From contig NC_052149.1 in the NCBI RefSeq assembly GCF_902713615.1, forward strand, positions 127,103,256 to 127,167,255: DNA of 64,000 nt, written 5' to 3'. Under the pieces are notes generated by a model, which was not told where the DNA came from, did not search any database, and saw only the letters and a program-made list of their open reading frames with translations. The stretch's first letter is position 1; each line of letters begins with the position of its first letter. The stretch comes from Scyliorhinus canicula. Its lineage: Eukaryota. Below are positions 14,660-64,000 of the stretch, in pieces. The position numbers and the translations under genes were made by a program.

Positions 14660-14708
14660 ATGATTTCAGCCATCCAGCTGATCTTGCCTCTGGCATTCTG
14701 CACCGCAG
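14660..14708 (+). CDS. IGKV: Ig kappa leader exon (MISAIQLILPLAFCTA-G)
   Basis: ATG, hydrophobic signal peptide, phase-1 GT donor at 14709 matching the AG acceptor at 14893-14894. Confidence 0.93.
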
Positions 14709-14894
14709 GTACAAATCTCTCTCCTTCCACCTTGAATATTTTCCTGCTCTCCATTTCAATCCAATTCTACTGACTTGTGATTGAAGGGAAAATGCTGAAA
14801 GCAGAGGAACAGTCAGTGTCTCCAACAATATCTCATTGTACAGGCTCTTTCTGTGACAGTTCTTACTTCACTCTGTTTCTCTATTACCCCTCAG

Positions 14895-15193
14895 GTATCA
14901 GTGGAGACATCATCATGACCCAGTCTCCCCCGGTGCTGTCATTGAGCCTGGGCCAGACCGCAACCATCACCTGTACGGCCAGTCAAGGCATTGGTGATAA
15001 TTGTGCTTGGTTTCAACAGCGAGAAGGTCAGAAACCGGTTCTACTGATACATGATGGAAGAACTCGACACACAGGAATATCTGACCGATTCACCGGCAGT
15101 CAACAGTCCAACACATTCACTCTAACACTCAGCAACGTACAAAATGAGGATGTTGCTAATTATTACTGTCTGCAAGATGAAGCCTACCCCCTA
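14895..15193 (+). CDS. IGKV: Ig kappa (shark type III/NS4-like) V exon, unrearranged, open frame
   Basis: GISG-DIIMTQSPPVLSLSLGQTATITC...W(F)QQ...LLIH...DRF.G...EDVANYYC-LQDEAYPL; canonical Cys23, Trp35, Cys88 and kappa-type Pro95; ends at an RSS. Confidence 0.97.
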
Positions 15194-15221
15194 CACAGTG
15201 ATACAGAGCCTTACAAAAACC
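15194..15221 (+). other. V recombination signal sequence, 12-bp spacer
   Basis: CACAGTG-atacagagcctt-ACAAAAACC, with consensus heptamer and nonamer. Confidence 0.98.
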
Positions 15222-15626
15222 TCAATACACACAGTCCCATCTCCTGTACTGACACATCCCACAGTTTTATAGAATATATAATAATGAACACACAGTCCCA
15301 CCTCCTCTACTAACACATTCCACAGGTTTATATAATATATAATAAACACAAGATAGGAAACTGTACAAATGATTCTCACCGTCCACTACACACTCCAGTC
15401 CCTGTGGTGTCCACAGCTCACTGAAGGCCTCAAGTTTCCATCTTACTCTCCATATCCACGTATGAAGAGCAGCGGAAAGATTTATCATCTAAAATTAGAA
15501 TTCTCTACTCTCCCAACAAACACAGAGACATTGAGAGAAACAGAGAGAGAAAGAGTTCGAGAGAAAGACATGAGTGAGTGAGAGACAGAGAGAGGGTGAG
15601 AGTGAGTGAGTGAAGCAGAGAGCAGA

Positions 15627-15665
15627 GGTTTTTGTACAGCCCCTGCACTGGAAGCTGTCAGTGTG
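15627..15665 (-). other. J recombination signal sequence, 23-bp spacer
   Basis: GGTTTTTGT-23 bp-CAGTGTG (heptamer reads CACACTG on the minus strand, 1 mismatch). Confidence 0.95.
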
Positions 15666-15700
15666 GCTTACGTTCGGTAAAGGAACCAAGCTCAGACTGA
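15666..15700 (+). CDS. IGKJ: Ig kappa J segment (LTFGKGTKLRL-S)
   Basis: FGxG motif; GTAAGT donor at 15701; phase-1 A joins GC of the C exon to give Ser. Confidence 0.96.
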
Positions 15701-16329
15701 GTAAGTAAACCCCAATCCTCCGTTATTAACCCTTTCAATACTGAAACTTTCTCAAACACAAATGCTGAATAGTTGAAGGTGTTAGTGGGGAGCTGCAGTG
15801 AATGAAATGGTTCATTGAAGAACACTGTGTAGAACAGGGTGCCCAGCTGTATTTCTTTAGTTCCATTCCCCCCCTTTAAGCAGCAAGATATAAGTAAGCA
15901 GCTTTTACCCACCGTGTGGAGGAGATCTGGACGTTTGCAGACTGTGTTCACATTCCTGGACCATGGAGTGAAATCACTCACTAGACTCCTGTCAGTCTGT
16001 GTGTGACAGACACGGGCAGAGTTTGATGTGAGCTCTGGCTCCCTGTCACACTCTCTGATATAACTGATCACAGCAGCAGCAGCAGCACAGAGAGACACCG
16101 AGGTCCCACTTCCCCCAGCTTTAACTCTGCTCTCTCCACTCCCTGCTTATCTCTTAGCAAAGTTCTGATGACAAACAGGTCCAGCAGGGCTCACAATCCA
16201 GTGGCTTCAGTGTTCCAGGCTTTTGGGGAGACTCTCAGTTACTTTCTCTTTGGGTCGAGTTCAGTCTGATATTTATCCCTGATCCAATATTCCTGAAAAT
16301 CCCTGGAGATATTTGTATTGTTTGATGTG

Positions 16330-19300
16330 ATGTGTGATCTCTGGCTGGGCCAGCATTTATTGCCCATCCCTAATTGCCCTTGAACTGAGTGTCTTGCTCG
16401 GCCATTCCAGAGGGCATTTCAGAGTCAACACATTACTGGAGTCACTTGTAGGCCGGACAAGGTCAGGATGGCAGATTCCCACTTCAGACCCACACATCCC
16501 ATAAATTAACTTTTAAAAATGGCCCAAACTCCACTTTCCTGTCGGTCCCCATAACCCTTGACCCCCGTCAATCAAAAATCTGTCTAACTCAGCCTGGAAT
16601 ATATTCAACGTCCCAGCATGCACTGCTCTCTGGGAAAGAGAATTCCAAAAACAAACGACCCTCTGGGAGAAGAAATTCCTCCTCATCTCCGCCTTAAATG
16701 GAGATCCCTTATTTTTAAACTGTATCCACTAATTCTAGATTCCCCACAAGGGGAAACATTCTCTCAGCATCCACCCTGTCAAGCTCCCTCGGAATCTTAT
16801 ATGTTTCAATAAGATCACCTCTCATTCTGCAATGAGTGCAGACCCAACCAGCTCAACCTTTCCTCATCAAACATTCCATTCCTCAGTGGAATCAGCCCAG
16901 TGAATCTTCTCTGAACTGCTTCCAATGTCGGAACATCCGTCCTTAAGTAAGGAGACCAACACTGTGCCCAGTACTCACGGTGTAGTCTCCCCAATGTGCT
17001 GTATAGATGGAGCAAGACTTCCCTACTTTTATACTCCATCCCCCTTGTAATAAAGGACAACATTCCATTGACCTTCCTCATCACTTGCTGTACCTGCAGG
17101 TTAACGTTCTGTGATTCATACACAAGGACACCCAGATCCCTCTGTAACACAGCTTTCTGCAGTCTCTCTCCATGTCAATAATATTCTGATTTTCTATTCT
17201 CCCTAACAAAGTGGACAAGCTCACATTTCCCCACATTATACTCCATCTGTCAAATGTTCTCCCCACTCACTGAACCTATCAATACCCCTTTTCAGACTCT
17301 GTATCCTCCTCACAACTTGCTTTCCTACCTATCATTTTATCATCAGCAAATTTAGCTACAATACTCTCATTGCCTTCATCCAGCTCATTAATATAGATTG
17401 GAGAGTTAAAACCCCAAACAACAGCCATCTTCCTTTGTGCTGGGTATGACTCCAACCAGCGGGTTTCACAGCGGTGTAGGGTGGTTGCAATGGGAAATCC
17501 CATTAACAATCGGTGGGAAGACAGAATCCCGCTGACAGCGAATGCCTCACAGCCGGGAAACACACAGCTGAGGAGCCGGAGAGTCCCACACAGGAGCAGG
17601 AGTAGACCATACAGCCCATCAAAACTGGTCCACCATTCAATACGATCATGACTGATCTCTGGCTTCAACTCCATTTCCCATCCACTCCCCGTATTCCTAA
17701 ATTTCTGAAAGACCAAAAATGTATTTTTTTACTTCAATTTCTCTGGGATGTGGGCTTCACCGGGTAAGCCAGCATTTGTTTCCTATCCACCATTGCCCTT
17801 GAGGAGGTGGTGTTGTGCTGCCTTCTTGAATCGCTGCAGTCCATCTGGTGTAGGTACACCCTCAGTGCTGTTTGGAAAGGAGTCCCAGGATTTTGACCCA
17901 GTGACAGTGCAGGAATGATGATATATTTCCAAGTAAGGATGGTGAGTGACTTGGAGGGCAACCTCCAGGTGGTGGTGTTCCCATGTATCTGCTGCCCTTG
18001 TCCTTCTAGTTGGTAGAATTTGTGGGTTTGGAAGGTGCTGCCTAAGGAACCTTGTCAGATCCTGCATTGCAGCTTGTAGATGGTACACATGGCTGCCAAT
18101 GTGCGTCGGTGGTGGAGGGAGTGAATGTTTGTGGAAGGGATACCAATCAAGCAGGCTGCTTTATCCTATCCCATACAATTGCAGAAATACGTCTCTACTT
18201 TTATACTCCAGTCCTTTTGCAATAAACGCTAACATTCCATTTGCTTTTTCGAATTACATGCTGTACCTGCAGCCAGACTTTCTGCATTTCATGAACAAAG
18301 ACACCCAGATCCCTCTGCCCAGACACATTTTGAATCTGCTTTCCATTGAGATAATAATTTGCCTGACTAGTTTATCAGCCAAAATGGATAACCTCATGCT
18401 TCTCCACATGAATCTCCATCTGCCAAATTTTGGCCCAACCTCCTCGCCGATCTATAGCCGTCTGTCAGAGAATCATAGAATTTACAGTGCAGAAGGAGGC
18501 AATTCGGCCCATCGAATCAGCACCGGCCCTTTGAAAGAGCACCCTACTTAAGCCCACACCTCCAACTTATTCCCATAACCCAATAACCCCACCTAACATT
18601 TTTGGTATTAAGGTCAATCTTGCATGGCCAATTCACCGAGCCTGCACATCTTGGACTGGGGGAAGAAATTGGATCACCCGGAGGAAACACACGCAGACAC
18701 AAGGAGGAAGTACAAACTCCACACAGACAGTGACCCAAACCAGGAATCGAACCTGGCACCCTGGAGCTGTGAAGCAACGGTGCTAACCACTGTGCTACTG
18801 TGCCGCCCATAAAACCTTGTCTCCCCTTCACTGCCTGCTTTCCCACCTATTTTAGTATCGTCCACAAATTTTTCTATATTGCACTCTGTAATATAGATTT
18901 TAAACAGTTGAGGTCCGAGGACTGACCCTTGCGGCACCCCACCAGTTACAGTTCACCAGCCAGAGAAGGACCCATTTATTCCAGCCATCTGCTTTCTGTC
19001 AGTCAGCCAATCCTCAATCCAATCTAGTACTCTGCACCCCCAGTCCCCCGTGATCTCACCTTCTGGATCAGTCTTTTATGCAGCATCTTGTCAAATGTCT
19101 TCTGGAAGTCTAGGTATACAACATCCACAGGTTCCCCATTATCCACCTTGTTGGTTCTGTCCTCAAAGAACTCAAGCAAGTTTGCCAAGCATGACGTACT
19201 CTTCAGAAAACCATGCTGACAATGGTGGATTGAGCTTTGCCTTTCCAACTGTTCAGTTATCTCCTCCTTAATGATTGATTCCAGCGACTTCCCCACCACA

Positions 19301-20950
19301 GAGGTCAAGCTAACCGGTCTATAGTTTCCTACATTTTGCCTCTCTCCCTTTTTAATTGCGAGCATCACATTAGCCTGTTTCCAATCCAGCGGGATCCTTC
19401 CAGAATGCAGGGAATTCTGAAATATCACAACCAATGCATCCATTATCTCTTCTGCCACCTCCTATCATATCCTAGGCTGCAGGCCATCAGGTCCCAGAGA
19501 CTTATCTGCCTTTTGTCCGATTAGTTTATTCAATACCGACCTACTAGTGATGGTTATTGCACCAGGTTCCTCTGCATTAAATGTAGTTTTTCACAAAGTT
19601 ATAATCTTCTCCTGAGAAGACAGAGGCAAAATATTGGTTCAGTGCCTCCGCCATCTCCGTGTTCCCCATTATTACCTCACTAGTATTGTCCTCTAAAGGG
19701 CCAACATTTACTTTAGCTATTCTCTTCCTCTTTATAAACTTATAGAAGCGTTTGGTATCAGTGATTATGTTTTCTGCTGGTTTCCTTTCGTAGATCATCT
19801 TGGTTTTTTGATTTTCTTCTTAGTAACCTTTTACTGAACCCTAAAGTTCTCCCAATCCTCCAGCTGACCACCAGCTTTTGCAGTGAGGTATGCCTTAGTT
19901 TTTGCCATTATGTCTTCTTTGACTTCCTTGTTTAGCCATGGAATATTTTTCTCCCTTTTACACTTCCTCTGCCTCTCTTATTGAAGGTGGTCATTGCCTG
20001 GAACGTGTGTGGTGCGAATGTTAAATCTGTCAAACACAGCCTGAAATATATTTAACGATATTTGTCATCGGAACCTGTCAAAATCCTTGGAAAATCCATG
20101 TTGTCAACATCAAACTCACTCCCTTCATCAGCCCTCCTCGTTCCCTCCTCAACATATTCAATCAAGTTAGTCAGACACGACCTTCCCTTAACAAATCCAT
20201 GTTGACTGTCATTGATCGAACTGTGTCTCTCTCAATGATGATTATAATTTCTCTCAGAATTATTTCCAAATATTTCCCCACCACTGAGGTTAGACTGACT
20301 GGTCAGTAATGACTCAGTCTGTCCCTTCCTCCCTTTTTAAACAACGGCACAACATTATCATCCTCCAGTCCTCCGACACCACGCCTGTAGTCAGAGAGGA
20401 TTGGAAAATAATGGTCAGGGCCTCCGCTATTTCTTCCCTTAGCAGCCTGGGATACATTTCACCCAGGCCTGGGGGTATCTCCATTTTCAAAGATGATGAA
20501 CACATTAATATCTCCTCTCTCACTATCTTTATCACATCCAATATTTCACAATTCTCCTCCTCCTGAACACCAATGACTATTTTTTGTCTCATTTGTGAAA
20601 ACTGATGTAAATTATTCATTAAGAACCATCTCCATGTCTTCCACCTCCACACACAAGTCACATTTTGCTCTCTAATTGGTCCCACTCATTCATTAGTTAT
20701 CCTGTCACAATGTCCCTCACTATTGCTTTGTGTGAACATATTTGTTCTGAACTCTCTCTATCTCCAGCTTGAATATCCTCCCCCTGCTCTGACACTGTTT
20801 TACCATCAAGTCGCTGTTTCCTGTCCAATTTGGCAAATCCCAGTTTAGTAAAATTGGCCTTTCCCCAATTAAAAACTTTTATCTTGGTCTGTCTTTACCC
20901 TTTTCAATAACTACTCGAAATCTAACTGAATTATGATCACTATTACCCAA
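16330..20950 (-). mobile_element. Patchwork of CR1-like LINE fragments, MITE remnants and a V-SINE (about 18468-18808) filling the J-C intron of cluster 1
   Basis: Peptides such as GNYRPVSLTSVVGKSLESII and GEPVDVVYLDFQK on the minus strand; SINE V-domain present. Internal boundaries are approximate. Confidence 0.8.
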
Positions 20951-21181
20951 TACTCTCCCACTGATACCCCTTCACCTGCCCAGATTCAATCGCTATAACT
21001 GTCCAAAACTGCTCCTTCTCTTGTTGGGATTGTTCTGTACTGGTTAGAAAGGTTGCTCAGAATGGATTGTCAGAATTCCAGACCACCTATATATTGATAC
21101 ATGTCTTGATTCCAGTTAATATATTGGAAGTTGAAATCCTTTATAATAGCAGCGATTAAAATTCCTTCTTTTCTCTTTCAG

Positions 21182-21510
21182 GCCGTGAGAATTCACAACC
21201 CACACTGACCCTGCTGCCCCCCTCCCTGGAGGAGGTCAAGACCAAGGGCACTGCCACCCTGGTGTGCCTTGCCAATCACTTCTATCCCGATGAGCTGGTG
21301 GTGGAGTGGAAGAAGGATGGTGCAGCCATTTCGGACGGGGTTCAGACCAGCAACTACCTGCGAGCTTCGGACAACACCTACAGTGTCAGCAGCCTGCTGA
21401 CCCTCTCTGGCTCTGCCTGGGAATCCAACGCCCGCTTCTCCTGTGCCCTCACCCACGTGAGCCTCTCCTCTGCCCTCAGCAAGAGCATCAGGAGATCAGA
21501 ATGTGCGTAG
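21182..21510 (+). CDS. IGKC: Ig kappa constant exon, cluster 1
   Basis: TTCAG acceptor; (S)RENSQPTLTLLPPSLEEVKTKGTATLVC...VEWKKDG...YSVSSLLTL...FSCALTH...RSECA-stop; C1-set domain with penultimate Cys for heavy-chain linkage. Confidence 0.97.
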
Positions 21511-22102
21511 AGGGTTAGAGACAGTCCACAGAGGAGACACAACTTTAAATAGAACAGGGGTGAGCTGGGAGGGCAAAGGTCATTGTCAGCAGTGAATTAC
21601 AACTCTCTTCCTTCTTGGAACTGGGTCTGAGGCACTTCTGAGGGTCAGGGGTTAAGGCAGGTTTTGGGATAGTGTAGAGGGATCATCGCCCCATATCTAA
21701 CCCCGTGCTGCACCTGTCCTGGGAGTATTTGATGGGGACAGTGTGGAGGGAGCTTTGCTCTGTATCTAACACCGTGCTGCACCTGTCCTGGGAGTGTTTG
21801 ATGGGACAGTGTAGACTCGTGATGCCAAGTAAAACCTCTCTAAGATGCTGAAGATTGTCAGCTGTACCAAAATAATGTGACCCTCTGAAGTCTCTACTTC
21901 AGGAAAGCAGACCTCCTTCCTGCTCACCCTGCAGTTACAATTTAAGGTTTAATCACTGTTTAAAGGGACAGGATTCTGATGATATTGAGAAAATCTCCAC
22001 AAGTGTTTTAATAAACCTCCAATTTCCGTGAATTTCTCCAGCTTCCTCTGGCTGGGTTGTCTATTCAAGTCTTTTCTCTGACAATGTAAATCTGTAAAAG
22101 GT

Positions 22103-22108
22103 AATAAA
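22103..22108 (+). terminator. Polyadenylation signal of cluster 1 (a second, copy-specific AATAAA lies at 22010-22015)
   Basis: AATAAA followed by a GT-rich tract; conserved in cluster 2 (TTTATT at 57358-57363). Confidence 0.7.
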
Positions 22109-22561
22109 CATTAAGAATATTCAGTCTGTGTCTCATGTGTGCTTTGGAAATGTCCCTCCTCCCCATCAGCTGATTGGTTGTATTTCAGCAAGTGATTGTC
22201 ATGATTGGCTGGTTGGCCTGTCAATCAATGACACATCAGCAGAAGATTGGATTCAAAGACATTTATCAATCATTTTAAAATGATCAGTTTTATCTGGAAT
22301 CTCTGAGTTTACAAGATTCAAATCAGAAAAGAGACTGAAAGTTGCTGGGATTAAATCATCACAATCACAATTCTCCAACCCATATTCCCCACCTCCCCCT
22401 TGACCTGACCATCTCACGTTGTCTCACTACTCCCATAGTTTCAATCACAGATAAGACCATCTCTGATCACTTCCTTGTATCACTCCCCACCCACATCCCC
22501 CTTCCACACCCCAACCCTACCCCCTTCTGTATCCATCCCTGGAAAAACCTCTTCCCAAATT

Positions 22562-22860
22562 CACTGTAGCACAGTGGTTAGCACTGTTGCTTCACAGTTG
22601 CTTCAGGGTCCCAGATTCTATTCCCGGCTTGGGTCACTGTGCGGAGTCTGCACGTTCTCCCTGTGTCTACGTGGATTTCCTCTGGGTGCTCCGGTTTCCT
22701 CCCACAAGTCCCAAAAGATGTGCTTGTTTGGTGAATTGGACATTCTGAATTCTCCCTCAGTACACCGAACACACCTAGTGTGGTGACTAGGAGATTTTTT
22801 ACAGTAACTTCATTGCAGTGTTAATGTAAGCCTACTTGTGACATTAAAGAAGATTATAGT
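22562..22860 (+). mobile_element. V-SINE with the alternative ...GTAAGCCTACTTGTGACA tail
   Basis: tRNA-like head, V-domain, tail GTAACTTCATTGCAGTGTTAATGTAAGCCTACTTGTGAC. Confidence 0.85.
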
Positions 22861-23934
22861 TATAACTTACAACGGCACTTTCAAAATCCCAACTATCTCT
22901 GGCCCTCCGATCACCACAACATTTCAGCAGGGACTGATTTACCCAACCTCACCCTCACCTCCACCTTTGATATCCTCGTCCCCAATAAAACCATTCCTCT
23001 CTCTCACCCTGACCATTCCCCCTGCTACGGCCTCATCTCCACTCACTTAATCCAAGTGACGCAGACTTGAAAGGATATGGTGGAGAACTGGTTTATCCAT
23101 TAAAATGATCCCAGACCTGACCCCAACAGTGGCTCTGAAACTGGATCCAATATTTAAGTTTATTTGTCAGACTCTGTGGAAAGAATGAATACAATATTAG
23201 CTATTAAATTTCACATCCAAAAATAACAGCTCACACTTACCCCTTAAACAACTCAATTCCCTTTGAACAAGAAAAGAGACACACAGCGCTCAATCCATCT
23301 GAATATGGGAGAATTGTGGACTCTGCGCCAGGCAGATCAGAATTCAACTCCTCTCTGCAAAGTTTCTCCAAATAAACATTGCTTCTCCGCAGCTCTTCAA
23401 AATGACTCTCTGTCAATTACAATGACAATTATAATTGCAGGCTATACCACATTTCTATTTCAGCGTGCTGGCAGGATGCTTCATTACGCCGGCTGGTCAA
23501 TGGGGTTTCCCATAGTGCGGCAGCACAACGCAGTCGGGAAACCCCCGCAACTTTCCCAATTGAACCACAGTCCATTAGTCCAGACTGAAAAACACATTCC
23601 TTTGTAAATGTCACTTTCTGGCTGCTACGAGCACCCAGGCCCAGCAAAACAGAATGCTTTAAAAAAAAATATGACCAGTGCAAACACACTCTGACCCTAA
23701 TCTTTTAACCCTTAAATTGCCCAATACTTAGAATCCAATATTCCTAAAATCTTCCAGTCGTCACTCCATCCACTGTCAGATCCGGCTGGACCACTTCAAA
23801 CACTCCCGGCTCCTACTCCCATCTGCTAAAACTGCTCACTATTCCAGGATCATCCTGGAATGTAAAGATAATCCCCGGCTTCTTTTCTCCACTGCAGACC
23901 ATCTTCTTAAACCCCTCTCTCCTGTCCCTTGTTT

Positions 23935-25418
23935 TCCAGTGCCCCCACCCACACACCCGCAACCCAGCCCCTCCCTTCCCGGGGGATGGCCGAACACCCA
24001 CCGTGCCCCACATGCCAGCACCCATGCCAGCCGCCATGGACGGGTGCTCTGACCACTGAGGCCACCATCTCCCAACCCCTGGGCTGCTTGCATCGGAACG
24101 TCTAACGGTTGTGCTGTTTGTGTCCCCCCCTCCCCCCCCCCACCACAGGAGAAGGCCGCGCACAACCGCCGGGAGCGGGGGAAGACCGGGGTGGGGGGGG
24201 GGGGGGTGGTCCACAGGACTGCAGCCTCACATCATGCCTGAGCAGAGGGCACTGGACGTGGTTGGTTGCCCGCCAGAAGGGGAGGTCACCGAGGCGGAAT
24301 TCAGCTGCGGGCGAGCATGTGGGACCCTGTGCTTAGTTGCGGATCCCCATGGAACATGTGTGAACACCCCACCCACTCCCCTCACTCCCCTCACCCACAC
24401 CCCCTCATCCCAAAACTGCACCCCCAGCCCCCTCAGCCCCCGCAACACCTCACCCCCCTCAACCCTGCCGCTGCCCCCCACCCCGCTGTCTAAACTTACA
24501 TGCCGTCTTGTGTCTTACTGGACCTCCTGAAGATGGGGCCGGACCATCCAGAGTGCAGGCCCTGTTCGAGGACCATGCCCCCCTCCCCCAGTGCCCAGAC
24601 CATCCCCATCACCCCCGCCTTAGGGATTCAACGAGACCCTGTGATGGACTGGCGCTTGCATGCAGGGATCAATCAGGTGGAAGGTGCTGCCGTGGGCATG
24701 AGTCAGACATTGTCATACGATGTGGAGCATCGAGGCTCATCACAGAGCAGATTGCCAGCATCCTCCATCCTATGGGCCAGACCCGCTGTCACTGCCAACC
24801 CCGTACCCCCAGGGACCAGACCCGCTGTCACTGCCAACCCCGCGCCCCCAGGGACCAGACCCGCTGTCACTGCCAACCCCGTGCCCCCAGGGACCAGACC
24901 CGCTGTCACTGCCAACCCCGTGCCCCCAGGGACCAGACACGCTGTCACTGCCAACCCCGTGCCCCCAGGGACCAGACCCGCTGTCACTGCCAACCCCGTG
25001 CCCCCAGGGACCAGACCCGCTGTCACTGCCAACCCCGTGCCCCCAGGGACCAGACCCGCTGTCACTGCCAACCCCGTGCCCCCAGGGACCAGACCCGCTG
25101 TCACTGCCAACCCCGTGCCCCCAGGGACCAGACCCGCTGTCACTGCCAACCCCGCGCCCCCAGGGACCAGACCCGCTGTCACTGCCAACCCCGCGCCCCC
25201 AGGGACCAGACCCGCTGTCACTGCCAACCCCGTGCCCCCAGGGACCAGACCCGCTGTCACTGCCAACCCCGTGCCCCCAGGGACCAGACCCGCTGTCACT
25301 GCCAACCCCGTGCCCCCAGGGACCAGACCCGCTGTCACTGCCAACCCCGTGCCCCCAGGTTGTAGCGCTTTCGCGAAGCTTTCGCGATTTCAGCATCAGC
25401 AAACGGAGAATCGCGCTC
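23935..25418. mobile_element. PIF/Harbinger remnant with a terminal inverted repeat at its right end
   Basis: Similar to the inter-ORF region of the element at about 29600-29750 (opposite strand); ends in CAAACGGAGAATCGCGCTC. Confidence 0.6.
24776..25358 (+). repeat. 39-bp minisatellite, about 15 near-perfect copies
   Basis: Unit CCAGACCCGCTGTCACTGCCAACCCCGTGCCCCCAGGGA. Confidence 0.97.
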
Positions 25419-25494
25419 CATATCTTTCCCTCATTTATCTAGTTTCATTCCGATCTCACCTTAGTCCCTCTCTGAGCTCATTCTGTCCATGAGA

Positions 25495-28284: not shown

Positions 28285-28877
28285 TGTTATGGGCCAGGGT
28301 TTAGAGAACCCCAAAGTGTATCATGGAGTTCACCTGACCCACAACTTTTACTAGATTGTAGTATGGGGAGCACACGGCCCACTCTACAGATGTGGTACAG
28401 CAGAAATGGAAAAGTATTTTTTCCAGCAAACAATGTTTACTCTATGAATCAAGTTAACATTTTTTAAAACATACAGTGAACATCTTAGCAACCATGAATT
28501 CAAATACAACTCCGTAAGAAAACAACATTAAGTCATCCTTAAGCTTTCCTTTTAACATCCGTAAGACTTAAAAAAAACCTTTTCACAGAAGCACATCAGG
28601 TTTAAATTCACTACTGAGAAAAGTTATCCCTCTGAATTCACCAAATGATCAAGAGATAGTCTTTACATGGCAGAGAGAACAACATTACACCTCCTGCGGC
28701 TGACTGCAGCTTCAACACCCACAGTGTTTCAACAAAACCAAAAAACCCACAGACACACCCAAGCGTTTTCTCAAAGCAAAACTAAAAAGCAGAGCCAGAG
28801 CTAAGCTCCACCCACACTCTGACATCACTGCAGTAATAGACACCCATTCCTTAAAGGTAATCTCACATGACATGACA
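28285..28877 (-). mobile_element. Probable solo LTR (about 590 bp) interrupting the Harbinger A transposase
   Basis: TG...CA termini (TGTTATG...CATGACA); transposase homology resumes on both sides; no clean TSD found. Confidence 0.6.
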
Positions 28878-30609: not shown

Positions 30610-33600
30610 CGGGGGGGTAGTGGGTGTGCGGGGGTGATGGGCGTGTAGCGGTGGTGTGAGGGTGAGGGTTTGGGGCTGAGGGTGGTGTGAGGATGGTGTG
30701 GGGGTTAGGGTGGTGTGGGGGTGAGGGTGGTGTGGGGGTGAGGGTGGTGTGGGGGTGGTGTGGGGGTGAGGGTGGTGTGAGGGTGGTGTTGGGGTGAGGG
30801 TGGTGTGGGGGCGGTGTGGGGGTGAGGGTGGTGTTGGGGTGAGGGTGGTGTGGGGGTGGTGTGGGGGTGAGGGTGGTGTGGGGGTGAGGGTGGTGTGGGG
30901 GTGAGGGTGGTGTGGGTGTGATGGTGGTGAAGGTGGTGTGGGGGTGGTGTGGGGGTGGGGGAGGGTGTGGGGGGGGTGAGGGTGGTGTTGGGTGGGGGTA
31001 AGGGTGGTGTGGGGGTGAGGGCGGTGTTGGGGTGAGGATGGTGTGGGGGTGAGGGTGGTGTGGGGGTGAGGGCAGTGAGGGGGTGGTGAGGGGGTGGTGT
31101 GGGGGTGGTGTGGGGGTGAGGGCGGTGTTGGGGTGAGGATGGGGTGGGGGTGATGTGAGGGTGGGGTGGGTGTGAGGGTGGGGTGGGGTGGGTGTGAGGG
31201 TGGGGTGGGGTGAGGATGGGGTGGGGTTGAGGATGGTGTGGGGTGAGGATGGTGTGGGGGTGAGGATGGTGTGGGGATGAGGATGGTGTGGGGGTGAGGA
31301 TGGTGTGGGGGTGAGGATGGTGTCGGGGTGAGGGTGGTGTGGGGGTGAGGGCAGTGAGGGGGTGGTGTGGGGGTGAGGGTGGTGAGGGGGTGGTGAGGGG
31401 GTGAGAGTGGGGTGGAGGTGAGGGTGGGGTGGGGTGAGAGTGGTGTGGGGTTGAGGGTGGTGTGGGGGTGAGGGTGGTGTTGGGGTGAGAGGGTGTGGGG
31501 GTGAGGGTGGGGTGGGGTGAGGGTGGGGTGGGGTGAGGGTGGTGTGGGGGTGAGGGTGGTGTGGGGGTGAGGGTGGTGTTGGGGTGAGAGTGGTGTGGGG
31601 GTGAGAGTGGTGTGAGGGTGGGGTGGGGGGTGAGGGTGGTGTGGGGTGGGGGTGGTGTGGGGGTGAGGGTGGTGTTGGGGTGAGAGTGGTGTGGGGGTGA
31701 GGGTGGGGTGGGGGTGAGGGTGGGGTGGGGTGAGGGTGGTGTGGGGGTGGGGGTGCTGTGGGGGTGGTGTGGGGGTGAGGGTGGTGAGGGTGGTGTGGGG
31801 GTGGTGTGGGGGTGAGGGTGGTGTGGGGGTGTGGGGGTGGTGTGGGGGTGAGGGTGGTGTGGGTGTGAGGGGTGGTGTGAGGGTGAGGGTGGTGAGGGTG
31901 GTGTGGGTGTGAGGGTGGTGTGAGGGTGAGGGTGGTGTGGGGGTGGTGTGGGGGTGAGGGTGGTGTGGGTGTGAGGGTGGTGTGAGGGTGAGGGTGGTGA
32001 GGGTGGTCTGGGTGTGAGGGTGGTGTGAGGGTGAGGGTGGTGTGGGGGTGGTGTGGGGGTGAGGGTGGTGTGGGTGTGAGGGTGGTGTGAGGGTGAGGGT
32101 GGTGAGGGTGGTGTGGTTGTGAGGGTGGTGTGAGGGTGAGGGTGGTGAGGGTGGTGTGAGGGTGAGGGTGGTGTGGGGGTCAGGGTGGTGAGGGTGGTGT
32201 GGGGGTGGTGTGGGTGTGAGGGTGGTGTGAGGGTGAGGGTGGTGAGGGTGGTGTGGGGGTGAGGGTGGTGTGGGGGTGAGGGTGGGGTGGGGTGAGGGTG
32301 GGGTGGGGGTGGTGTGTGGGTGAGGGTGGCGTGGTGGTGAGGGTGGTGTTGGGGTGAGGGTGGTGTGGGGGTGGTGTGGGGGTGAGTGTGGTGTGGGGGT
32401 GAGGGTGGTGTGGGGGTGAGGGCGGTGTGGGGGTGAGGGCGGTGTTGGGGTGAGGGTGGGGTGGGGGTGCGGGCGGTGTTGGGGTGAGGATGGGGTGGGG
32501 GTGAGGATGGTGTGGGGGTGAGGGTGGTGTGGGGGTGGTGTGAGGGTGGGGTGGGTGTGAGGGTGGGGTGGGGGTGAAGGTGGGGTGGGGGTGAGGGTGG
32601 TGTGGGGGTGTGGGTGGGGTGGGGGTGAGGGCGGTGTTGGGGTGAGGATGGGGTGGGGTTGAAGATGGCATGGGGGTGAGGATGGTGTGGGGGTGAGGGT
32701 GGTGTTGGGGTGAGGATGGTGTGGGGGTAAGGGTGGTGTGGGGGTGAGGGCGGTGTTGGGGTGAGGATGGTGTGGGGGTGAGGGTGGTGTGGGGGTGAGG
32801 GCAGTGAGGGGGTGGTGAGGGGGTGGTGTGGGGGTGGTGTGGGGGTGAGGGCGGTGTTGGGGTGAGGATGGGGTGGGGGTGATGTGAGGGTGGGGTGGGT
32901 GTGAGGGTGGGGTGGGGTGGGTGTGAGGGTGGGGTGGGGTGAGGATGGGGTGGGGTTGAGGATGGTGTGGGGTGAGGATGGTGTGGGGGTGAGGATGGTG
33001 TGGGGATGAGGATGGTGTGGGGGTGAGGATGGTGTGGGGGTGAGGATGGTGTGGGGGTGAGGGTGGTGTGGGGGTGAGGGCAGTGAGGGGGTGGTGTGGG
33101 GGTGAGGGTGGTGAGGGGGTGGTGAGGGGGTGAGAGTGGGGTGGAGGTGAGGGTGGGGTGGGGTGAGAGTGGTGTGGGGTTGAGGGTGGTGTGGGGGTGA
33201 GGGTGGTGTTGGGGTGAGAAGGGTGTGGGGGGTGAGGGTGGTGTGGGGGTGAGGGTGGGGTGGGGGTTGAGGGTGGGGGGTGGGGTGGGGTGTGTGGGGT
33301 GAGGGTGGTGTGGGGGTGAGGGTGGTGTTGGGTGAGAAGTGGTTTGGGGGTGAGAGTGGTGTGAGGGTGGGGTGGGGAGGTGAGGGTGGTGTGGGGTGTG
33401 GGGTGGTGTGGTGGAGTTGAGGGTGGTGTGTGGGGTGAGAGTGGTGTGCGGGGGTGGGGGGCTCTGTGGGGGGTGGTGTGGGGAGTGAGGTGGCTGACTG
33501 ACGGGTGGTGTGGGGGTGGTGTGGGGGTGAGGGTGGTGTGTGGGTGTGAGGGCGTGGTGTGGGGGTGAGGGTGGTGTGAGGGTGTGTGAGGGTGGTGTGA

Positions 33601-35795: not shown

Positions 35796-36806
35796 GGGAC
35801 CAGAAAGCGCACAGTGTTCGACAGTCAACACATGCAGCCCATGGGGTGGGTAGCTGCTGGCCTCAGTGGCCAGGGCACCCAGCCATAGCGGATGGTATTG
35901 GTGCCAGCCTGTGGTGCAGGGTGGGGGATTGGCACCCTCTGGCTGGAGGGGATAGAGTAACGTGTGTATGGGATGGATGTTGGTGCCTGGGGAATAATGC
36001 TGCTGACTAACCCTCTCCGCACTGTGGAGGTTATGCAGTTTTTTATGGCACTGCAGGCCGCTCCAAATGGTGTTGCTGGTATAGCCTGTACCACCTGCGC
36101 TGGCATGGTGAACGGTGGCGGCTGGCAACCTCCTTCCTGGGCCGGAGTACAGGGTTTCCTGCCTCTCCTCCATGGCGTCCAGGAGGGTCTCAAACTTGCT
36201 GTTGGTGAATCATGATGCTGCTCTCCTCACTGCCATCTTGTTGGCTGGGATGGTGGGTGTGGGGGTGAAGTGTGAATTTACAGCTGCAGCTTGTCAGCCT
36301 CCTGAGTGTCAATCCCAAATCCAGTGAATCCAGCACCACTTCTCAATGGAATCGATTGTGTTCCCATGCAGCCGGTGTTCGCTCCTCAATGTTTGTTCAA
36401 TCGATCCAGGTGCAGCGCCAGTTTTGTTGTTATAGAAGTCCACGAATCCCGACCCAGCGTCAACGCTGAGGGAGCCAATCACCAGAAAGATTTCGAAGTG
36501 TGGTAGTGAGCGGGAACCGCCGCGAGCTTCCCCGTGCACAGCCCAGTGAGGCCGGCAACGCTAATCAACATTAATTAGTCCACGTAACGAGGCCCCAAAG
36601 GGCTTCTCGCCACAAAAGTAGGCTCGCCAGCTGATTCTCCAGCAACGCACTCGCCAGACCCCGCTAACAAGAGACACTTAAACAGCACTCGCTCAGCCAA
36701 CCCCAGTCAGCTCACAACAATGGCACTGAGGAGGCCGGGCCCAAGATTCGGGGACGCAGATCTGGAGAGGCTCCTAGATACAGTGTAGGCCAGGAGAGCT
36801 GTCCTG

Positions 36807-55789: not shown

Positions 55790-56700
55790 GAGCGGAGGTC
55801 AATCGCTCAGGCAAAACAAAGATTGGACAAAGGAGTGGACAATAAGGACAGTGTGAGAGGGGGAATGTGAGACAGAGAGATGGAGAGGTTCAGGGAGGGA
55901 ATTCCAGAGCTTGGGGCCCAGGCAGCTGAAGGCACAGCCACCAATGGGGGAGCGATTCTGATCAGGAATGTACAAGAGGCCACAATTAGAGGAGCGCAGA
56001 TATCTCGGAGGGTTGTGGGGCTGGAGGAGATTCCAGAGATAGGGAGGGACGAGGACATGGAGGGATTGGAAAACAAGGATGAGAATTTTAAAATCAAGAC
56101 ATTGCTTGACTTGGAGCCAATGTGGGTCAGTGAGCACAGGGGGTGATAGGGGAACGGGACTTGGTGAGAGTTCAGACTGGGACAGCAGAGTTTTGGATGA
56201 GCTCATGTTTCCGGAGGGTAGGATGTGGGAGGGCAGCCAGGACTTATTGGAATAGTCACGTCCAGAGGTAACGGAGACATAGATGAGGGTTTCGGCAGCA
56301 GATGAGCTGAGAGAAGGAGGTGGGTCTCATGGACAAGTTGAGCTCAGAAAGGACATGAGGGGAGATAGGAGAGAAACTAGAGAAAGATGTGAGTTCAGGG
56401 CCCGGGCAGGGGAGAGAATTGGAGGAAGTTTGTCCAGACGGCCTAGTGGAAGGGAGGGACGTGGCCGAGGCAGCTGATTGGATCGTCTCAATCTTAGTGA
56501 CAAAGACGTCAATGAGCTCCTCCCACTTGTTGTTGGAGGTGAGGGTGGAGGGGACAGGGGAGAGGGGTTTAAGAAGATGGTCTGCAGTTGAGAAAAGAAG
56601 CCGGGATTATCTTTACATTCCAGGATGATCCTGGAATAGTGAACAGTTTTAGCAGATGGGAGTAGGAGCCGGGAATGTTTGAAGTGGTCCAGCCGGATCT
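55790..56700 (-). mobile_element. L2-clade LINE 3' fragment
   Basis: HWLQVKQCLDFKIL...PPYL...RYLRSS...GGCAFSCLGPKLWNSLP motif. Confidence 0.85.
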
Positions 56701-56891
56701 GACAGTGGATGGATAAACCAGTTCTCCACCACATCCTTTCAAGTCTGCGTCACTTGGATTAAGTGAGTGGATATGAGGCCGTAGCAGGGGGAACAGTCAG
56801 GGTGAGAGAGAGGAATGGTTTTATTGGGGACTCGGATATCAAACGTGGAGGCGAGGGTGAGGTTGAGTAAATCAGTCGCTGCAGTAAATCA

Positions 56892-57125
56892 GGGGCAGCA
56901 CGGTAGCATGGTGGTAGCACAGTTGCTTCACAGCTCCAGGGTCCCAGGTTCGATTCCCGGCTTGGTTCACTGTCTGTGCGGAGTCTGCACATTCTCCCCG
57001 TGTGTGCGTGGGTTGCCTCCGTGTGCTCCGGTTTCCTCCCACAGTCCAAAGATGTGCAGGTTAGGTGGATTGGCCATGATAAATTGCCCTTAGTGTTCAA
57101 AATTGCCCTTAGTGTTGGGTTGAGA
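56892..57125 (+). mobile_element. V-SINE
   Basis: GGGGCAGCACGGTAGCATGGTGG head and V-domain. Confidence 0.85.
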
Positions 57126-57691
57126 ATTAGAGGAAGTTTGTCCAGACGGGCTAGTGGAAGGGAGGGATTCCAGATAAAACTGATCATTTTTAAATGATTG
57201 ATAAATATCTTTGAATCCAATCTTCTGCTGATATGTCATTGATTGACAGGCCAACCGCCAATCATGACAATCACTTGCTGAAATGCAGCCAATCAGCTGA
57301 TGGGGAGGAGGGACATTTCCAAAGCACACACAAGACACAGACTGAATATTCTTAATGTTTATTACCTTTTACAGATTTACATTGCCAGAAAAAAGACTTC
57401 AATAAACAGCCCAGCCAGAGGAAGCTGGAGAAATTCACAGGGAGAATGGAGGTTTTTTCTCATGTCTCATTGAAAAGTGACTGAACCTTAAATTGTAACT
57501 GCAGGGTGAGCAGGAAGGAGGTCTGGTTTCCTGAAGCAGAAACTTCAGGGGTCACGTTATTTTGGTACAGCTGGCAGACTTCAGCATCTTAGAGAGGTTT
57601 TACTTGGAATCACGAGTCTGCACTGTCCCATCAAACTCTCCCAGGGCAGGTACAGCACGGGGTTAGTTACAGAGTAAATATCCCTCTACAC

Positions 57692-58056
57692 CAGGGGTGG
57701 GCAATCTTTTCCGTGCAAGGGCCACATTCAGAAATTCACAATTTTAAAGGGCCGCATAGTATATTAAGTAAAATAATTAATATTTAAAATAATATAGTAC
57801 AGCACAGAACAGGCCCTTCGGCCTTCGATGTTGTGCCGAGCAATGATCCCCCTACTCAAGTCAACATATCCACCCTATACCAGTAACCCAACAGCCCCCC
57901 CGCCTCCGCCTCCCACCCCCCCCCCCCTCCTCTCCCCCCACCCCCCCCCCCCCCCCCCCCAATTAACCTTTTTTTTTATGACTTGATCTTGGTGGGCCGC
58001 ATAAAGACCTTTGGCGGGCCGCATGCGGCCCGCGGTCCTTAGTTTGCCCACCCCTG
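57692..58056. mobile_element. hAT (Charlie/Buster-like) MITE in the 3' UTR of cluster 2 C, with a nested SINE tail (about 57794-57895)
   Basis: TIR CAGGGGTGGGCAA at both ends; perfect 8-bp TSD CTCTACAC (57684-57691, 58057-58064). Confidence 0.92.
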
Positions 58057-58225
58057 CTCTACACTATCCCAAAACAGGCCTTAACCCCTGACCCTCAGAC
58101 GTGTCTCAGACCCACTCCCGAGAAGGAAGAGAGTTGTAATTCAGTGCTGACAATGACCTTTGCCCTCCCAGCTCACCCCTGTTCTATTTAAAGTTGTGTC
58201 TCCTCTGTGGACTGTCTCTAACACT

Positions 58226-58554
58226 CTACGCACATTCTGATCTCCTGATGCTCTTGCTGAGGGCAGAGGAGAGGCTCACGTGGGTGAGGGCACAGGAGAA
58301 GCTGGCGTTGGACTCCCAGGCAGAGCCAGAGAGGGTCAGCAGGCTGCTGACACTGTAGGTGTTGTCCGAAGCTCGCAGGTAGTTGCTGGTCTGAACCCCG
58401 TCCGAAATGGCTGCACCATCCTTCTTCCACTCCACCACCAGCTCATCGGGATAGAAGTGATTGGCAAGGCACACCAGGGTGGCAGTGCCCTTGGTCTTGA
58501 CCTCCTCCGGGGAGGGGGGCAGCAGGGTGAGTGTGGGTTGTGAATTCTCATGGC
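58226..58554 (-). CDS. IGKC: Ig kappa constant exon, cluster 2 (inverted)
   Basis: TTTCAG acceptor; (S)HENSQPTLTLLPPSPEEVKTKG...RSECA-stop; 5 nt differences from the cluster 1 C exon. Confidence 0.97.
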
Positions 58555-58614
58555 CTGAAAGAGAAGAGAAGAAATTTTATTTGCTGCCATGGTAAAGGAT
58601 TTAATCTTTCCAAA

Positions 58615-58920
58615 TACGGTAGCACCGTGGTTAGCACTGTTGCTTCACAGCACCAGGTTCTCCGGTTCGATTCCTGGTTTGGGTCACTATCAGGGCAGCG
58701 TCTGTACGTTCTCCCTGTGTGTGCGTGGGTTCCTCCAGGCACTCCAGTTTCCTCCCACACGTCCAGAAAAACATGCTGTTAGGTGAATGCGACATTCTGA
58801 ATTCTCCCTCTGTGTACCCAAACAGGCGCCGGAGTGTGGCAACTAGGGGCTTTTCACAGTGTTTTCATTGTAGTGTTAATGTAAGCCTACTTGTGACACT
58901 AAGAAAGATTATTATTATTA
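58615..58920 (+). mobile_element. V-SINE inserted about 60 bp upstream of the cluster 2 C acceptor
   Basis: Absent at the equivalent position of cluster 1; has head, V-domain and (ATT)n tail. Confidence 0.85.
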
Positions 58921-60159
58921 TTAACAGGGATCAAGTCAGTGTCTAGATGTTGCAGAATTCAGACAATCCATTTTGAGCAACCTTTCTCACCAGTACGAAA
59001 CAATACCAACAAGTGAACGGACAGTTTTGGACAGTTTTGTGGATTGAATCTGGGCAGGTGGAAGGTGTATCAATGAGAGAGTATTTGGGTAATAGTGATC
59101 ATAATTCAATTAGATTTAGATTAGTTATGGAAAAGGGTAAAGATAGACCAAGAGTAAAAGTTTCAAATTGGGGAAACGCCAGTTTTACTAAACTGAGACT
59201 TGCCAAGATGGTCAGGAAACAGCGACTTGATGGTAAAACAGTGTCAGAGCAGGGGGAGGATATTCAAGCTGGAGACAGAGCGAGTTCAGAACAAATATGT
59301 TCACACAAAGCAATAGTGAGGGACATTGTGACAGGATAACTAATGAATCTTTGAAAGTGGAGATACCCCCAGGCCCGGGTGAAATGTGTCCCAGGCTGCT
59401 TAGGGAAGAAATAGCGGAGGCTCTGACCATTATTTTCCAATAGTTTCTGAATATAGGCGCGGTGTCATTGGACTGGAAGACTGATCATGTTGTACCATTG
59501 TTTACCAAGGGGTGAAGGGAGAGGCTGAGGGAGTGATTTACTGGCTGCGCTGGAATCGGGATGGGACAGGGCATGGCTGGTAGATCCCAGGAGAGGCCTC
59601 TTCCAGGATCCTCACTTCACTTTGCTGATACCGGATCGAACCGGCACCCGACACCTACTGGCCTCGCGAGGGTACCCTAGCCGGGTGCCGTTTAGCACTG
59701 CTCCCACAAATGAGGACCAGGCCCAAAGGCACTTGAGGCGGTCTCCAAGGCGATCGGAGACCTCCGGGTGGTCAGCCTCTGGGCAGGGTGGCACCCTGGC
59801 ACTGATGATGTCACCCAGGCACCTTGGCACTGCCAGTCTGTTACCCGGGCTCTGCAAAGATGCCCAGATGGCACTGCCAGGCTGGCAGGGAAACAGCCAG
59901 AATGTCGGCTGGCAGCACCACGGCGTCAAACTGGAGTTTTCGTGTACTAGCCTGGGGTCTTCCCTGCCCATATAAGGTGGGTTATGGGCAGAGCTAAAGG
60001 ACCCCACAACAGGTGATTTGGGGCATGGCGGGGGGGTCCAGACGTTGGGGGGGGGGGGGGGTGTCAGTATATTGGGGTGCCATTTTTCTCTTTGTGCTGT
60101 GAATCTCCTCAGTGCAGGAAATGCCGGGGCACAAAAACAGAGTGCGTTCGATAGGGGGG

Positions 60160-62005
60160 GGGGTTCCTGCCGATACAGGCGGGGGGGGGGGGGTTCCCGC
60201 CGATACAGGCGGGGGGGGGTTCCCGCCGATACAGGCGGGGGGGGGGTTCCCGCCGATACAGGCGGGGGGGGGTTCCCACCAATACAGGCGGGGGGGGGGG
60301 TTCCCACCAATACAGGCGGGGGGGGTTCCCGCCGATACAGGCGGGGGGGGTTCCCGCCGATACAGGCGGGGGGGGGAGGTTCCCGCCAATACAGGCGGGG
60401 GGGTTCCCACCAATACAGGCGGGGGGGGAGGTTCCCACCAATACAGGCGGGGGGGGGGGGGTTCCCACCAATACAGGCGGGGGGGGGGGGTTCCCACCAA
60501 TACAGGCGGGGGGGGGGGGTTCCCACCAATACAGGCGGGGGGGGGGGGTTCCCGCCGATACAGGCGGGGGGGGGGAGGGTCCCGCCAATACAGGCGGGGG
60601 GGGGAGGTTCCCGCCAATACAGGCGGGGGGGTTCCCACCAATACAGGCGGGGGGGGGTTCCCGCCGATACAGGCGGGGGGGGGGAGGTTCCCGCCAATAC
60701 AGGCGGGGGGGGGGGTTCCCGCCGAAACAGGCGGGGGGAAGGTTCCCGTCGATACAGGCGGTGGGGGGGGGGGGGGGGTTCCCGTCGATACAGGCGGGGG
60801 GGGGGGGGTTCCCGCCGATACAAGCGGGGGGGGGGGGGTTTCCGCCGATACAGGCGGGGGGGGGGTTCCCGCCGATACAGGCGGGGGGGGGCTTCCCGCC
60901 GATACAGGCGGGGGGGGGCTTCCCGCCGATACAGGCGGGGGGGGGTTCCGCCGATACAGGCGGGGGGGGTTTCTGCCGATACAGGCGGGGGGGGGGGGAG
61001 GTTCCCGTCGATACAGGCGGGGGGGGGGAGGTTCCCGCCGATACAGGCGGGGGGGGGAGTTTCCCACCGATACAGGCGGGGGGGGTTTCCGCCGATACAG
61101 GCGGGGGGGGGGGGGGGTTTCCGCCGATACAGGCGGGGGAGGGAGGTTCCCGTCGATACAGGCGGGGGGAGGGGGAGGTTCCCGCCGATACAGGCAGGGT
61201 GGGAGGTTCCCGCCGATACAGGCGGGGGGGAGGTTCCCGCCGATACAGGCGGGGGGGGGGTTTCCCCCGATACAGGCGGGGGGGGGAGGTTCCCGCCGAT
61301 ACAGGCGGGGGGGAGGTTCCCGTCGATACAGGCGGGGGGGGGAGGTTCCCGTCGATACAGGCGGGGGGGGGTTCCCGCCGATACAGGCGGGGGGGAGGTT
61401 CCCATCGATACAGGCGGGGGGGAGGTTCCCGCCGATACAGGCGGGGGGGGGGGTTTCCCCCGATACAGGCGGGGGGGAGGTTCCCATCGATACAGGCGGG
61501 GGGGGGTTCCCGTCGATACAGGCGGGGGGGGGGGAGGTTCCCGTCGATACAGGCGGGGGGGGGGGTTCCCGCCGATACAGGCGGGGGGGAGGTTCCCATC
61601 GATACAGGCGGGGGGGGGTTCCCGTCGATACAGGCGGGGGGGAGGTTCCCATCGATACAGGCGGGGGGGAGGTTCCCGTCGATACAGGCGGGGGGGGGGA
61701 GGTTCCCATCGATACAGGCGGGGGGGGTTCCCGCCGATACAGGCGGGGGGGAGGTTCCCATCGATACAGGCGGGGGGGGGTTCCCGTCGATACAGGCGGG
61801 GGTGGGGTTCCGCCGATACAGGCGGGGGGGGGTTCCCGCCAATAAAGGCGGGGGGGGGGGGAGGTTCCCGCCGATACAGGCGGGGGGGTGGTTCCCGCCA
61901 ATACAGGCGGGGGGGGCGGGGGGGAGGTTCCCGCCGGTACAGGCGGGGGGGGGGGGGTCCCGCCAATACAGGCGGGGGGGGAGGTTCCCGTCGATACAGG
62001 CGGCT
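60160..62005 (+). repeat. About 1.85-kb minisatellite with 25-30-bp units (GTTCCCGCCGATACAGGC plus G-tract) inside a Harbinger-like insertion (about 59530-62020)
   Basis: Direct reading; variable-length G runs; absent from the cluster 1 intron. Confidence 0.95.
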
Positions 62006-64000
62006 GTACAAACCCACTGAGAACTGACTCTGTTTTTACAAATGTAATCTGTTGAGGAGGGAACGAGGAGGGTTGATGACGGGAGTGAGTTTGATGTTGA
62101 CAACATGGGTTTTCCAAGGATTTTGACAAGTTTCCAATGACAGACATGTGTGAAAATGAAAAGCTGATGGAATCCAAGGGAAAGTGACAAATTGGGCTGG
62201 ATTCTCCGTGTTCCAGCCGAGTGTTCCTTCGCAGCTCACTATTCATCGGCACAGGGATTAATGACTCCTGCCGCTTGTCAATGGAATTTCCTATGGAAGC
62301 CACCCCACATGGCCGTGAATCCCACGGGCAGGGGAGGCACTGCTGTCGATTAAAGTGAATCACAGAGACTGGAGATTTCAAATTGTTTCAGTGTAAGGAG
62401 GTAAAGGTTTGATGTTAAACTGGTTGAATCATTTTGGAATGTTGATTAAACATTTGTGAATGGTGGAGTAGGCGGGAACGTCCTGTGCGGGAACGTCCAG
62501 TTCACCAGCCGCATGATTCCTGGCCATGTTCCATTCACTGGCGGCTGGATTCTATCTTCCCACCTATTGTCAATGGGATTTGCCATAGCAACCACCCCAC
62601 ACCGCTGTGAAACCCACTGGCTGTGCTGCTGGCGGGAAAATTCAATCGCAACAACAGGACAAATCCGGCCCCTATTTCTGGCGGTCTTGTGTCCAGCTCA
62701 CACCCCCAGCCAAGCTGCCCCAGTTTAGATACAAAACTGGCATCGACCCAACAATGGGGAAAATTACCCAGGGATCTCCAGTCCACAAGAAGCTGGACAA
62801 ATCCAATCCGGACAATTACTGTCCCATCAGTCAACTCTCAATCATCAGCAAAATGATGGGTGTTGTTTCAACAGTGCTCTCAACACTTACTCAGCAATGA
62901 CCTGCTCATTGACACTCAGTTAAGGATCTGCCAGGGTCACTCAGCTCCTGACCTCATTATCGCCTTGGTTCAAACATGGACAAAAGAGCAGAACTCCAGC
63001 GGTGAGGCCAGAGTAACTTCCCTTGACATCGAGGCAGCATTTGACCGAGTTGGTCATCAACAAGCCCGAGCAAAATTGGAGTTGATGGGAATCAGAAGGG
63101 AAACTCTCCGCTGGTTGGAGTCATACCCAGCACAAAGGAAGATGGCTGTTGTTTGGGGTTTTAACTCTCCAATCTATATTAATGAGCTGGATGAAGGCAA
63201 TGAGAGTATTGTGGCTAAATTTGCTGATGATAAAATGATAGGTCGGAAAGCAAGTTGTGAGGAGGATACAGAGTCTGAAAAGGGAAATCTAGAATTAGTG
63301 GACACAGTTTAAAAATAAGGGATCTCCGTTTAAGGTGGAGATGAGGAGGAATTTCTTCTCTGAGAGGGTCGTTAGTTTTTGGATTTCTCTTTCCCAGAGA
63401 GCAGTGCATGCTGGGGCATTGAATATATTCCAGGCTGAGTTCGACAGATTTCTGATTGACGAGGGTCAAGGGTTATGGGGACCGACAGGAAAGTGGAGAT
63501 TGGGCCATTTTTAAAAGTTAATTTATGGGATGTGTGGGTCTGAAGTGGGAACCTGCCATCGTGACCTTGTCCAGCCTACAAGTGACTCCAGATCCGCAGT
63601 AATGTTTTGACTCTGAAATGTCCTCTGGAATGGCCGAGCAAGACACTCAGTTCAAGGGCAATTAGGGATGGGCAATAAATGCTGGCCCAGCCAGAGATCA
63701 CACATCACATCAAACAATAAAAATATCTCCAGGGATTTTCAGGAATATTGCATCAGGAATATCGGACTGAACTCGACCCAAAGAGAAAGTAACTGAGAGT
63801 CTCCCCAAAAGCCTGGAACACTGAAGCCACTGGATTGTGAGCCCTGCTGGACCTGTTTGTCATCAGAACTTTGCTAAGAGATAAGCAGGGAGTGGAGAGA
63901 GCAGAGTTAAAGCTGGGGGAAGTGGGACCTCGGTGTCTCACTGTGCTGCTGCTGCTGCTGTGATCAGTTATATCAGAGAGTGTGACAGGGAGCCAGAGCT

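Follow-up and report, generated by a model that had tools for sequence, protein, structure and literature searches.

Opposed immunoglobulin kappa miniclusters in the catshark Scyliorhinus canicula and the geometry of inversional V-J joining between them

The window analysed here is a stretch of 64,000 nucleotides from the catshark Scyliorhinus canicula (RefSeq assembly GCF_902713615.1, contig NC_052149.1, forward-strand positions 127,103,256 to 127,167,255), and coordinates are counted from its first letter. It carries two immunoglobulin (Ig) kappa light-chain clusters in opposite orientations, whose features are collected in Table 1. Cluster 1, on the + strand, is a complete and intact kappa minicluster spanning 14546-22108. 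All the hallmarks of a shark kappa minicluster are found in it: a leader split from the variable (V) exon, a V segment followed by a recombination signal sequence with a 12-bp spacer (12-RSS), a single joining (J) segment with a 23-RSS, and a single constant (C) exon in the matching phase. The V exon, V1, belongs to the Pfam V-set family (E=1.3e-13) and shares 70-77% identity with annotated shark kappa chains in a protein database search. By structure matching, its closest solved structures are the light-chain variable domains of antibody antigen-binding fragment (Fab) and single-chain variable fragment (scFv) chains. Its 12-RSS, already noticed in an earlier reading of the same DNA (the original prediction), proved to be a perfect consensus. 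V1 and J1 have the same polarity and are separated by 472 bp in deletional orientation. At the other end of J1, the splice donor (A followed by GTAAGT) and the first two bases of the C exon (GC) generate a Ser codon, as in shark chains derived from cDNA. The C1 exon differs by two residues from the kappa C region of Scyliorhinus torazame, and the V, J and C segments are 70-86% identical to the kappa chains of horn and nurse sharks. Judged by its sequence, cluster 1 looks functional.

Table 1. Features of the two kappa clusters and of the inverted duplication that contains them
Feature	Position	Strand	Basis and remarks
V1 promoter	14546-14599	+	read directly, function predicted; about 60 bp 5' of the ATG
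V1 octamer-like motif ATTTACAT	14546-14553	+	one mismatch to ATTTGCAT
V1 TATA-like motif TTTATAAA	14592-14599	+	read directly
V1 leader exon MISAIQLILPLAFCTA, donor GT	14660-14708	+	tblastn, shark kappa chains P0012 and P0015, residues 1-17
V1 exon, kappa-type V domain, open frame	14895-15193	+	Cys23, Trp and YYC present; tblastn
V1 12-RSS, CACAGTG-12-ACAAAAACC	15194-15221	+	no mismatch to consensus; directly 3' of the V exon
J1 23-RSS	15627-15665	-	nonamer without mismatch; 23-bp spacer; heptamer CACACTG with a single mismatch (position 5)
J1 coding segment LTFGKGTKLRL, donor GTAAGT at 15701	15666-15700	+	sequence read and tblastn
Left arm: J1-C1 intron, C1, 2.4 kb of 3' flank	16031-23928	+	blastn; interrupted by arm-specific transposable element insertions
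C1 exon, kappa constant domain, 108 codons and stop	21182-21510	+	tblastn; Pfam C1-set
AATAAA poly(A) signal, common to both clusters	22103-22108	+	arm alignment; cluster 2 counterpart within the block 57163-57455
Spacer between arms, 32.6 kb: Gypsy, LINE and Harbinger remnants, satellites	23929-56550		Pfam, TRF, tblastn, self-blast
Right arm: 3' flank, C2, J2-C2 intron to the window end	56551-64000	-	blastn
C2 exon, intact	58226-58554	-	tblastn; Pfam C1-set; R1H, L15P and R84S relative to C1
27-bp G-rich tandem array, 66 copies, 72% GC	60154-62003		TRF; inside the J2-C2 intron, no counterpart in the J1-C1 intron

Several observations concern V1 and its surroundings. The octamer-like motif of its promoter reads ATTTACAT in place of ATTTGCAT, and no perfect octamer was found near V1 by motif search. 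In addition, the first complementarity-determining region carries an unpaired extra Cys (GDNCAW, 14990-15005). Each of these two features could reduce the expression or the use of V1. Protein database searches with the V and C regions returned other shark species only, with a best V match of 77%, a result that is neutral on V1 expression. An AG-rich tandem repeat of 82-84 bp (about 7 copies, 13630-14220) ends about 330 bp 5' of the V1 promoter. The kappa genes of S. torazame are located on a 323-Mb and a 21-kb contig.

Cluster 2 is read on the - strand and displays within the window what identifies a second minicluster, namely an intact C exon, with its open frame kept and its splice acceptor conserved, and a homologous J-C intron. 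The stop codons of C1 and C2 are separated by 36.7 kb of gap-free sequence, in agreement with the original prediction of two clusters on opposite strands with C exons about 37 kb apart. The C exons differ at 5 of 329 nucleotides. The nonsynonymous differences (3 of 108 residues; C1/C2 codons CGT/CAT for R1H, CTG/CCG for L15P and CGC/AGC for R84S) are exactly the three single-nucleotide polymorphisms (SNPs) that had been put forward as diagnostic. The first of them affects the second codon of this exon, at a distance of about 40 nt from the V-J junction. The homology of the J-C introns toward the window end, also noted beforehand, extends to the last base: positions 16031-16745 align with 64000-63282 at 95% identity (E=0, blastn), the final base of the window corresponding to 16031 in cluster 1. 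By collinearity, J2 is predicted at about 64331-64365, beyond the window end, and its heptamer at 49.2 kb (49,172 bp) from that of V1. J2 with its 23-RSS and V2 with its 12-RSS are thus predicted features that would be situated past base 64000. Given the identity of about 95% of the adjoining intron, the sequences of J1 and J2 are probably alike. The alignment also reveals an insert of about 365 bp private to the 3' untranslated region (3'UTR) of C2. The 27-bp array of the J2-C2 intron is 1.85 kb long and C-rich on the cluster 2 sense strand; in the comparison of the arms, 59529-62046 is matched by 20158-20313 only.

Both clusters are contained in the arms of an inverted duplication. These arms are collinear and inverted (E=0), with 89-99% identity depending on the block and about 94% overall (blastn). 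They are thus diverged by about 6%, and each possesses private transposable element and satellite insertions. The only run of N in the window is at 739-892; since none occurs between the clusters, their opposite orientation is not a scaffolding artefact. An assembly artefact was rejected on the basis of the divergence of the arms, their private insertions and the gap-free sequence between them, and a duplicated haplotype on the basis of the divergence. The spacer between the arms contains no Ig segment, and no further V, J or C was detected by tblastn anywhere in the window. The search for additional RSSs in the window gave nothing beyond chance, with one extra 12-RSS-like match at 28720 (two mismatches) that is within the chance expectation.

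The geometry of joining was examined in a model in which the mirror image of cluster 1 was appended as a stand-in for the unread part, cuts were made at the heptamers of V1 and J2, and the DNA was then inverted. In this model, V1 abuts J2, with C2 located 5.8 kb downstream on the same strand, and a signal joint is created in which both heptamers meet head to head. The orientation of C1 and J1 is reversed, and the 23-RSS of J1 and the 12-RSS of V2 become convergent, about 0.9 kb apart and poised for a deletional join. When joined flush, V1 and J are out of frame by one base, which is normal because the frame is set by junctional processing. V1 and the predicted J2 are therefore modelled in an inversional 12/23 configuration, provided that cluster 2 mirrors cluster 1; in this pairing, the 12-RSS of V1 was read and the RSS of J2 was modelled only. 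On this point the original prediction, which placed V1 and J2 in inversional configuration about 49 kb apart, is upheld for the orientation and for the predicted distance, while J2 and its RSS themselves lie past the window. The outcome that it proposed, V1-J2-C2 with J1 left facing V2, is likewise reproduced by the model inversion and is conditional on the same mirror symmetry. V1 on the + strand and C2 with its intron on the - strand of one gap-free sequence constitute the opposite polarity seen in inter-cluster joining of the zebrafish type. The two possible partners of V1 are nevertheless very unequally placed, J1 at 472 bp being about 100 times nearer than the predicted J2 at 49,172 bp.

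It had been proposed, in addition, that this layout gives combinatorial diversity and receptor editing. In the model, neither of them follows from the layout. From two clusters that each contain a single V and a single J, two V-J joins are obtained, whether these are made in cis or crosswise. After the model inversion, the sole remaining RSS pair (J1 and V2) spans about 0.9 kb with the signal joint and does not span V1-J2-C2. After cis joins, the RSS pair of the other cluster is at least 40 kb from the first VJ. Receptor editing relies on an unused V and an unused J flanking the primary join, and no such pair is found around it in the model. Because the first VJ is not enclosed by the RSS pair that is left, it could be neither replaced nor silenced. 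Cross-joining is consequently not equivalent to editing, since no extra attempt is gained and the first VJ is not removable. A second join could only add another light chain, which is already possible for any two clusters in the genome. The combinatorial gain is also small because C1 and C2 differ by three residues, and V1-J2-C2 would be, as judged from these sequences, nearly the same protein as V1-J1-C1.

Comparison with known systems helps to situate this arrangement. The kappa (type III, NS4-like) miniclusters of nurse and horn sharks are organized like cluster 1, with a leader and a V carrying a 12-RSS, a J with its 23-RSS at a distance of a few hundred bp, and a C some kb downstream. Unlike the published accounts of these two species, where orientation is described within clusters only and the clusters are far apart, the catshark clusters are found in opposite orientation, 37 kb apart on gap-free sequence. 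The zebrafish Ig light-chain (IgL) loci described by Zimmerman et al. in 2008 (PMC3014032) resemble the catshark pair in several respects: multiple V-J-C clusters are present on one chromosome, the V of one cluster is opposite in polarity to the J-C of another, the V and J segments are flanked by a 12-RSS and a 23-RSS, respectively, and inversion would retain the intervening DNA. In zebrafish, however, cross-joins were demonstrated by fitting cDNA to the sequence of bacterial artificial chromosomes, whereas the catshark pair is known from its germline layout alone. Zebrafish clusters also contain several V segments, often inverted within their own cluster, unlike the single catshark V, which is deletional and 472 bp from its J. 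The same authors, who were the first to show inversional joining between IgL clusters, explain its presumed absence in sharks by the distance between clusters and their common polarity (PMC3014032).

Two mammalian systems can be compared in the same way. At the mouse and human Igk locus (PMC13190342), the 12-RSS is on V and the 23-RSS on J as in the catshark, and no DNA is lost in inversional joins, which bring the leftover segments into a deletional configuration. Editing at Igk nevertheless uses spare upstream V and downstream J segments flanking the primary VJ, while each cluster of the shark pair has a single V and a single J. The V-J-C units of mouse lambda, as cited in PMC3014032, offer a parallel of another kind: joining stays within the unit even if joins between units are geometrically possible, and the latter are extremely rare. 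These lambda units have the same polarity, and their cross-joins are deletional, in contrast to the catshark cross-joins, which would be inversional.

The locus probably consists of two ordinary cartilaginous-fish kappa (type III/NS4-like) miniclusters, each rearranging independently, that were left by an inverted segmental duplication. In this scenario, the duplication would have produced both clusters, which would since have diverged by about 6% and acquired different transposon and satellite insertions. Each cluster would make its own deletional V-to-J join across a gap of about 0.47 kb and then splice to its own C exon. The back-to-back orientation would be a by-product of the expansion of the kappa locus. 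V1-J2 cross-joins would be rare and their product nearly identical to that of the cis join. Within this scenario, the presence and condition of V2 and J2, the exclusive use of cis joins and the rarity of cross-joins are inferred. The general rule on which it leans is documented: reviews describe V(D)J joining in sharks as taking place within clusters and not between them (PMC5192425, PMC4279169, PMC3014032), with the qualifier "usually" in PMC12227049, and shark segments as being of one polarity, hence a forced deletion (PMC5192425, PMC4279169). The original prediction had mentioned this rule, together with the known inter-cluster inversion of teleosts (PMC3014032). In mouse Igk, the V segments taken by linear RAG scanning are mainly those in deletional orientation, inversional joins being less frequent (PMC13190342).

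Several points weigh against independent rearrangement of the two clusters. The rule of joining within a cluster only is based mostly on the heavy chains of nurse and horn sharks and on few light-chain clusters, and not on catshark kappa. An RSS of perfect consensus, such as that of V1, is of the kind that supports diffusional capture. No obvious insulator was found between the clusters in a crude scan for CTCF motifs, which is uninformative (0 exact matches, and 2 with one mismatch vs 2.5 expected). Inter-cluster inversional joining of zebrafish IgL is real (PMC3014032), and inversional V-kappa joining over megabases is routine in the mouse (PMC13190342). Finally, trans-rearrangements of shark Ig-V to T-cell receptor (TCR) delta between linked loci indicate that RAG joins can reach beyond one cluster (PMC12227049).

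In a first alternative, judged unlikely, V1-J2 inversion (possibly followed by V2-J1) would occur occasionally, in a small share of the B-cell precursors where both clusters are open simultaneously, as a neutral by-product. The V1-J2-C2 chains would then be functionally the same as the cis products. In its favor, the model is consistent with the required geometry and with 12/23 compatibility, the RSS of V1 is perfect, no CTCF-like barrier motif was found in the crude scan between the clusters, and precedents exist in zebrafish (PMC3014032), in mouse Igk (PMC13190342) and in the shark Ig/TCR trans-rearrangements (PMC12227049). Against this, J1 competes at 472 bp, the inversional orientation is disfavored in scanning (PMC13190342), joining is restricted to the cluster according to the reviews (PMC3014032, PMC5192425, PMC4279169), and the RSS of J2 is modelled and not read. 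A measurable rate of inversional cross-joining between the inverted-pair kappa clusters of the catshark in B-cell precursors is unlikely.

A second alternative, considered improbable, concerns the unread part of cluster 2, which would not be a standard open V-J-C unit: it could be germline-joined, be a pseudogene upstream of C2, or form an array of the type V-J, V-J. A V1-to-J2 join would then be impossible or be one of several options. Germline-joined light-chain clusters are known in sharks (PMC5192425, PMC2193156), but C2 is intact, and the J2-C2 intron keeps its collinearity with the cluster 1 intron as far as the window extends. As for the inverted pair being a working device for combinatorial diversity and receptor editing, through inversion and then a deletional join, the permissive geometry of the model is all that can be put in its favor, and it is highly improbable given that two joins are obtained either way, that the DNA lost in the second one is limited to about 0.9 kb around the signal joint, the first VJ-C being left untouched, and that C1 and C2 differ by three residues. 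Compared with these alternatives, the independent use of two duplicated miniclusters is retained as the most likely reading. The described anatomy is real and the described geometry correct, whereas the mechanism is no more than possible and would bring little functional benefit.

The more modest result that stands is the presence of catshark kappa clusters in both orientations on gap-free sequence, only 35-50 kb apart. The literature search retrieved no description of the relative orientation of neighbouring shark IgL clusters, nor of catshark kappa loci. A back-to-back pair of kappa clusters 37 kb apart seems to be unreported in the literature searched, even if it is visible to anyone annotating the assembly. 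The three SNPs of the C exon make the question of cross-joining testable with ordinary repertoire data. Should cross-joining prove to be measurable, inversional V-J joining between clusters would be demonstrated for the first time in cartilaginous fish, and the working rule that confines the rearrangement of shark Ig genes to a single cluster would no longer hold. Inverted pairs would then be a present-day stage halfway between minicluster organization and the kappa loci of bony fish and mammals, in which orientations are mixed. The origin of a V opposite to J-C, and the transition from cluster to extended loci, were raised as unexplained by Lewis and Wu (PMC2193153), and the inverted pair would provide in that case a concrete step toward understanding both.

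Two further observations were made within the arms. The block that follows the shared AATAAA (22109-22304 on the left, 57163-57360 on the - strand on the right) is about 96% conserved between the arms, well above the 3'UTR, and contains four ATTGG motifs and one CAGCTG E-box. It is a possible candidate for a 3' regulatory element of the kappa clusters. A reverse-transcriptase fragment of a long interspersed nuclear element (LINE) is present in both J-C introns (17286-17462, and 63108-63284 on the - strand) and is 98.9% identical between them, vs about 94% for the arms overall. This could reflect a gene-conversion tract or chance.

The spacer and the flanks of the window are rich in repeats. 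A 39-bp tandem repeat (24777-25359), with 15 copies that are 98% identical, is open in all frames and lies immediately beyond the left arm, at its inner end. Farther into the spacer, a G-rich satellite of 5.2 kb (30620-35798) consists of about 305 copies of the 17-mer GTGGGGGTGAGGGTGGT, with a GC skew up to +0.97. It is followed by a Gypsy element (36807-41429) whose two long terminal repeats (36807-37087 and 41149-41429) are 92.5% identical. Decayed relatives of this element are found at 1656-4815, in inverted orientation, and at 10572-12383.

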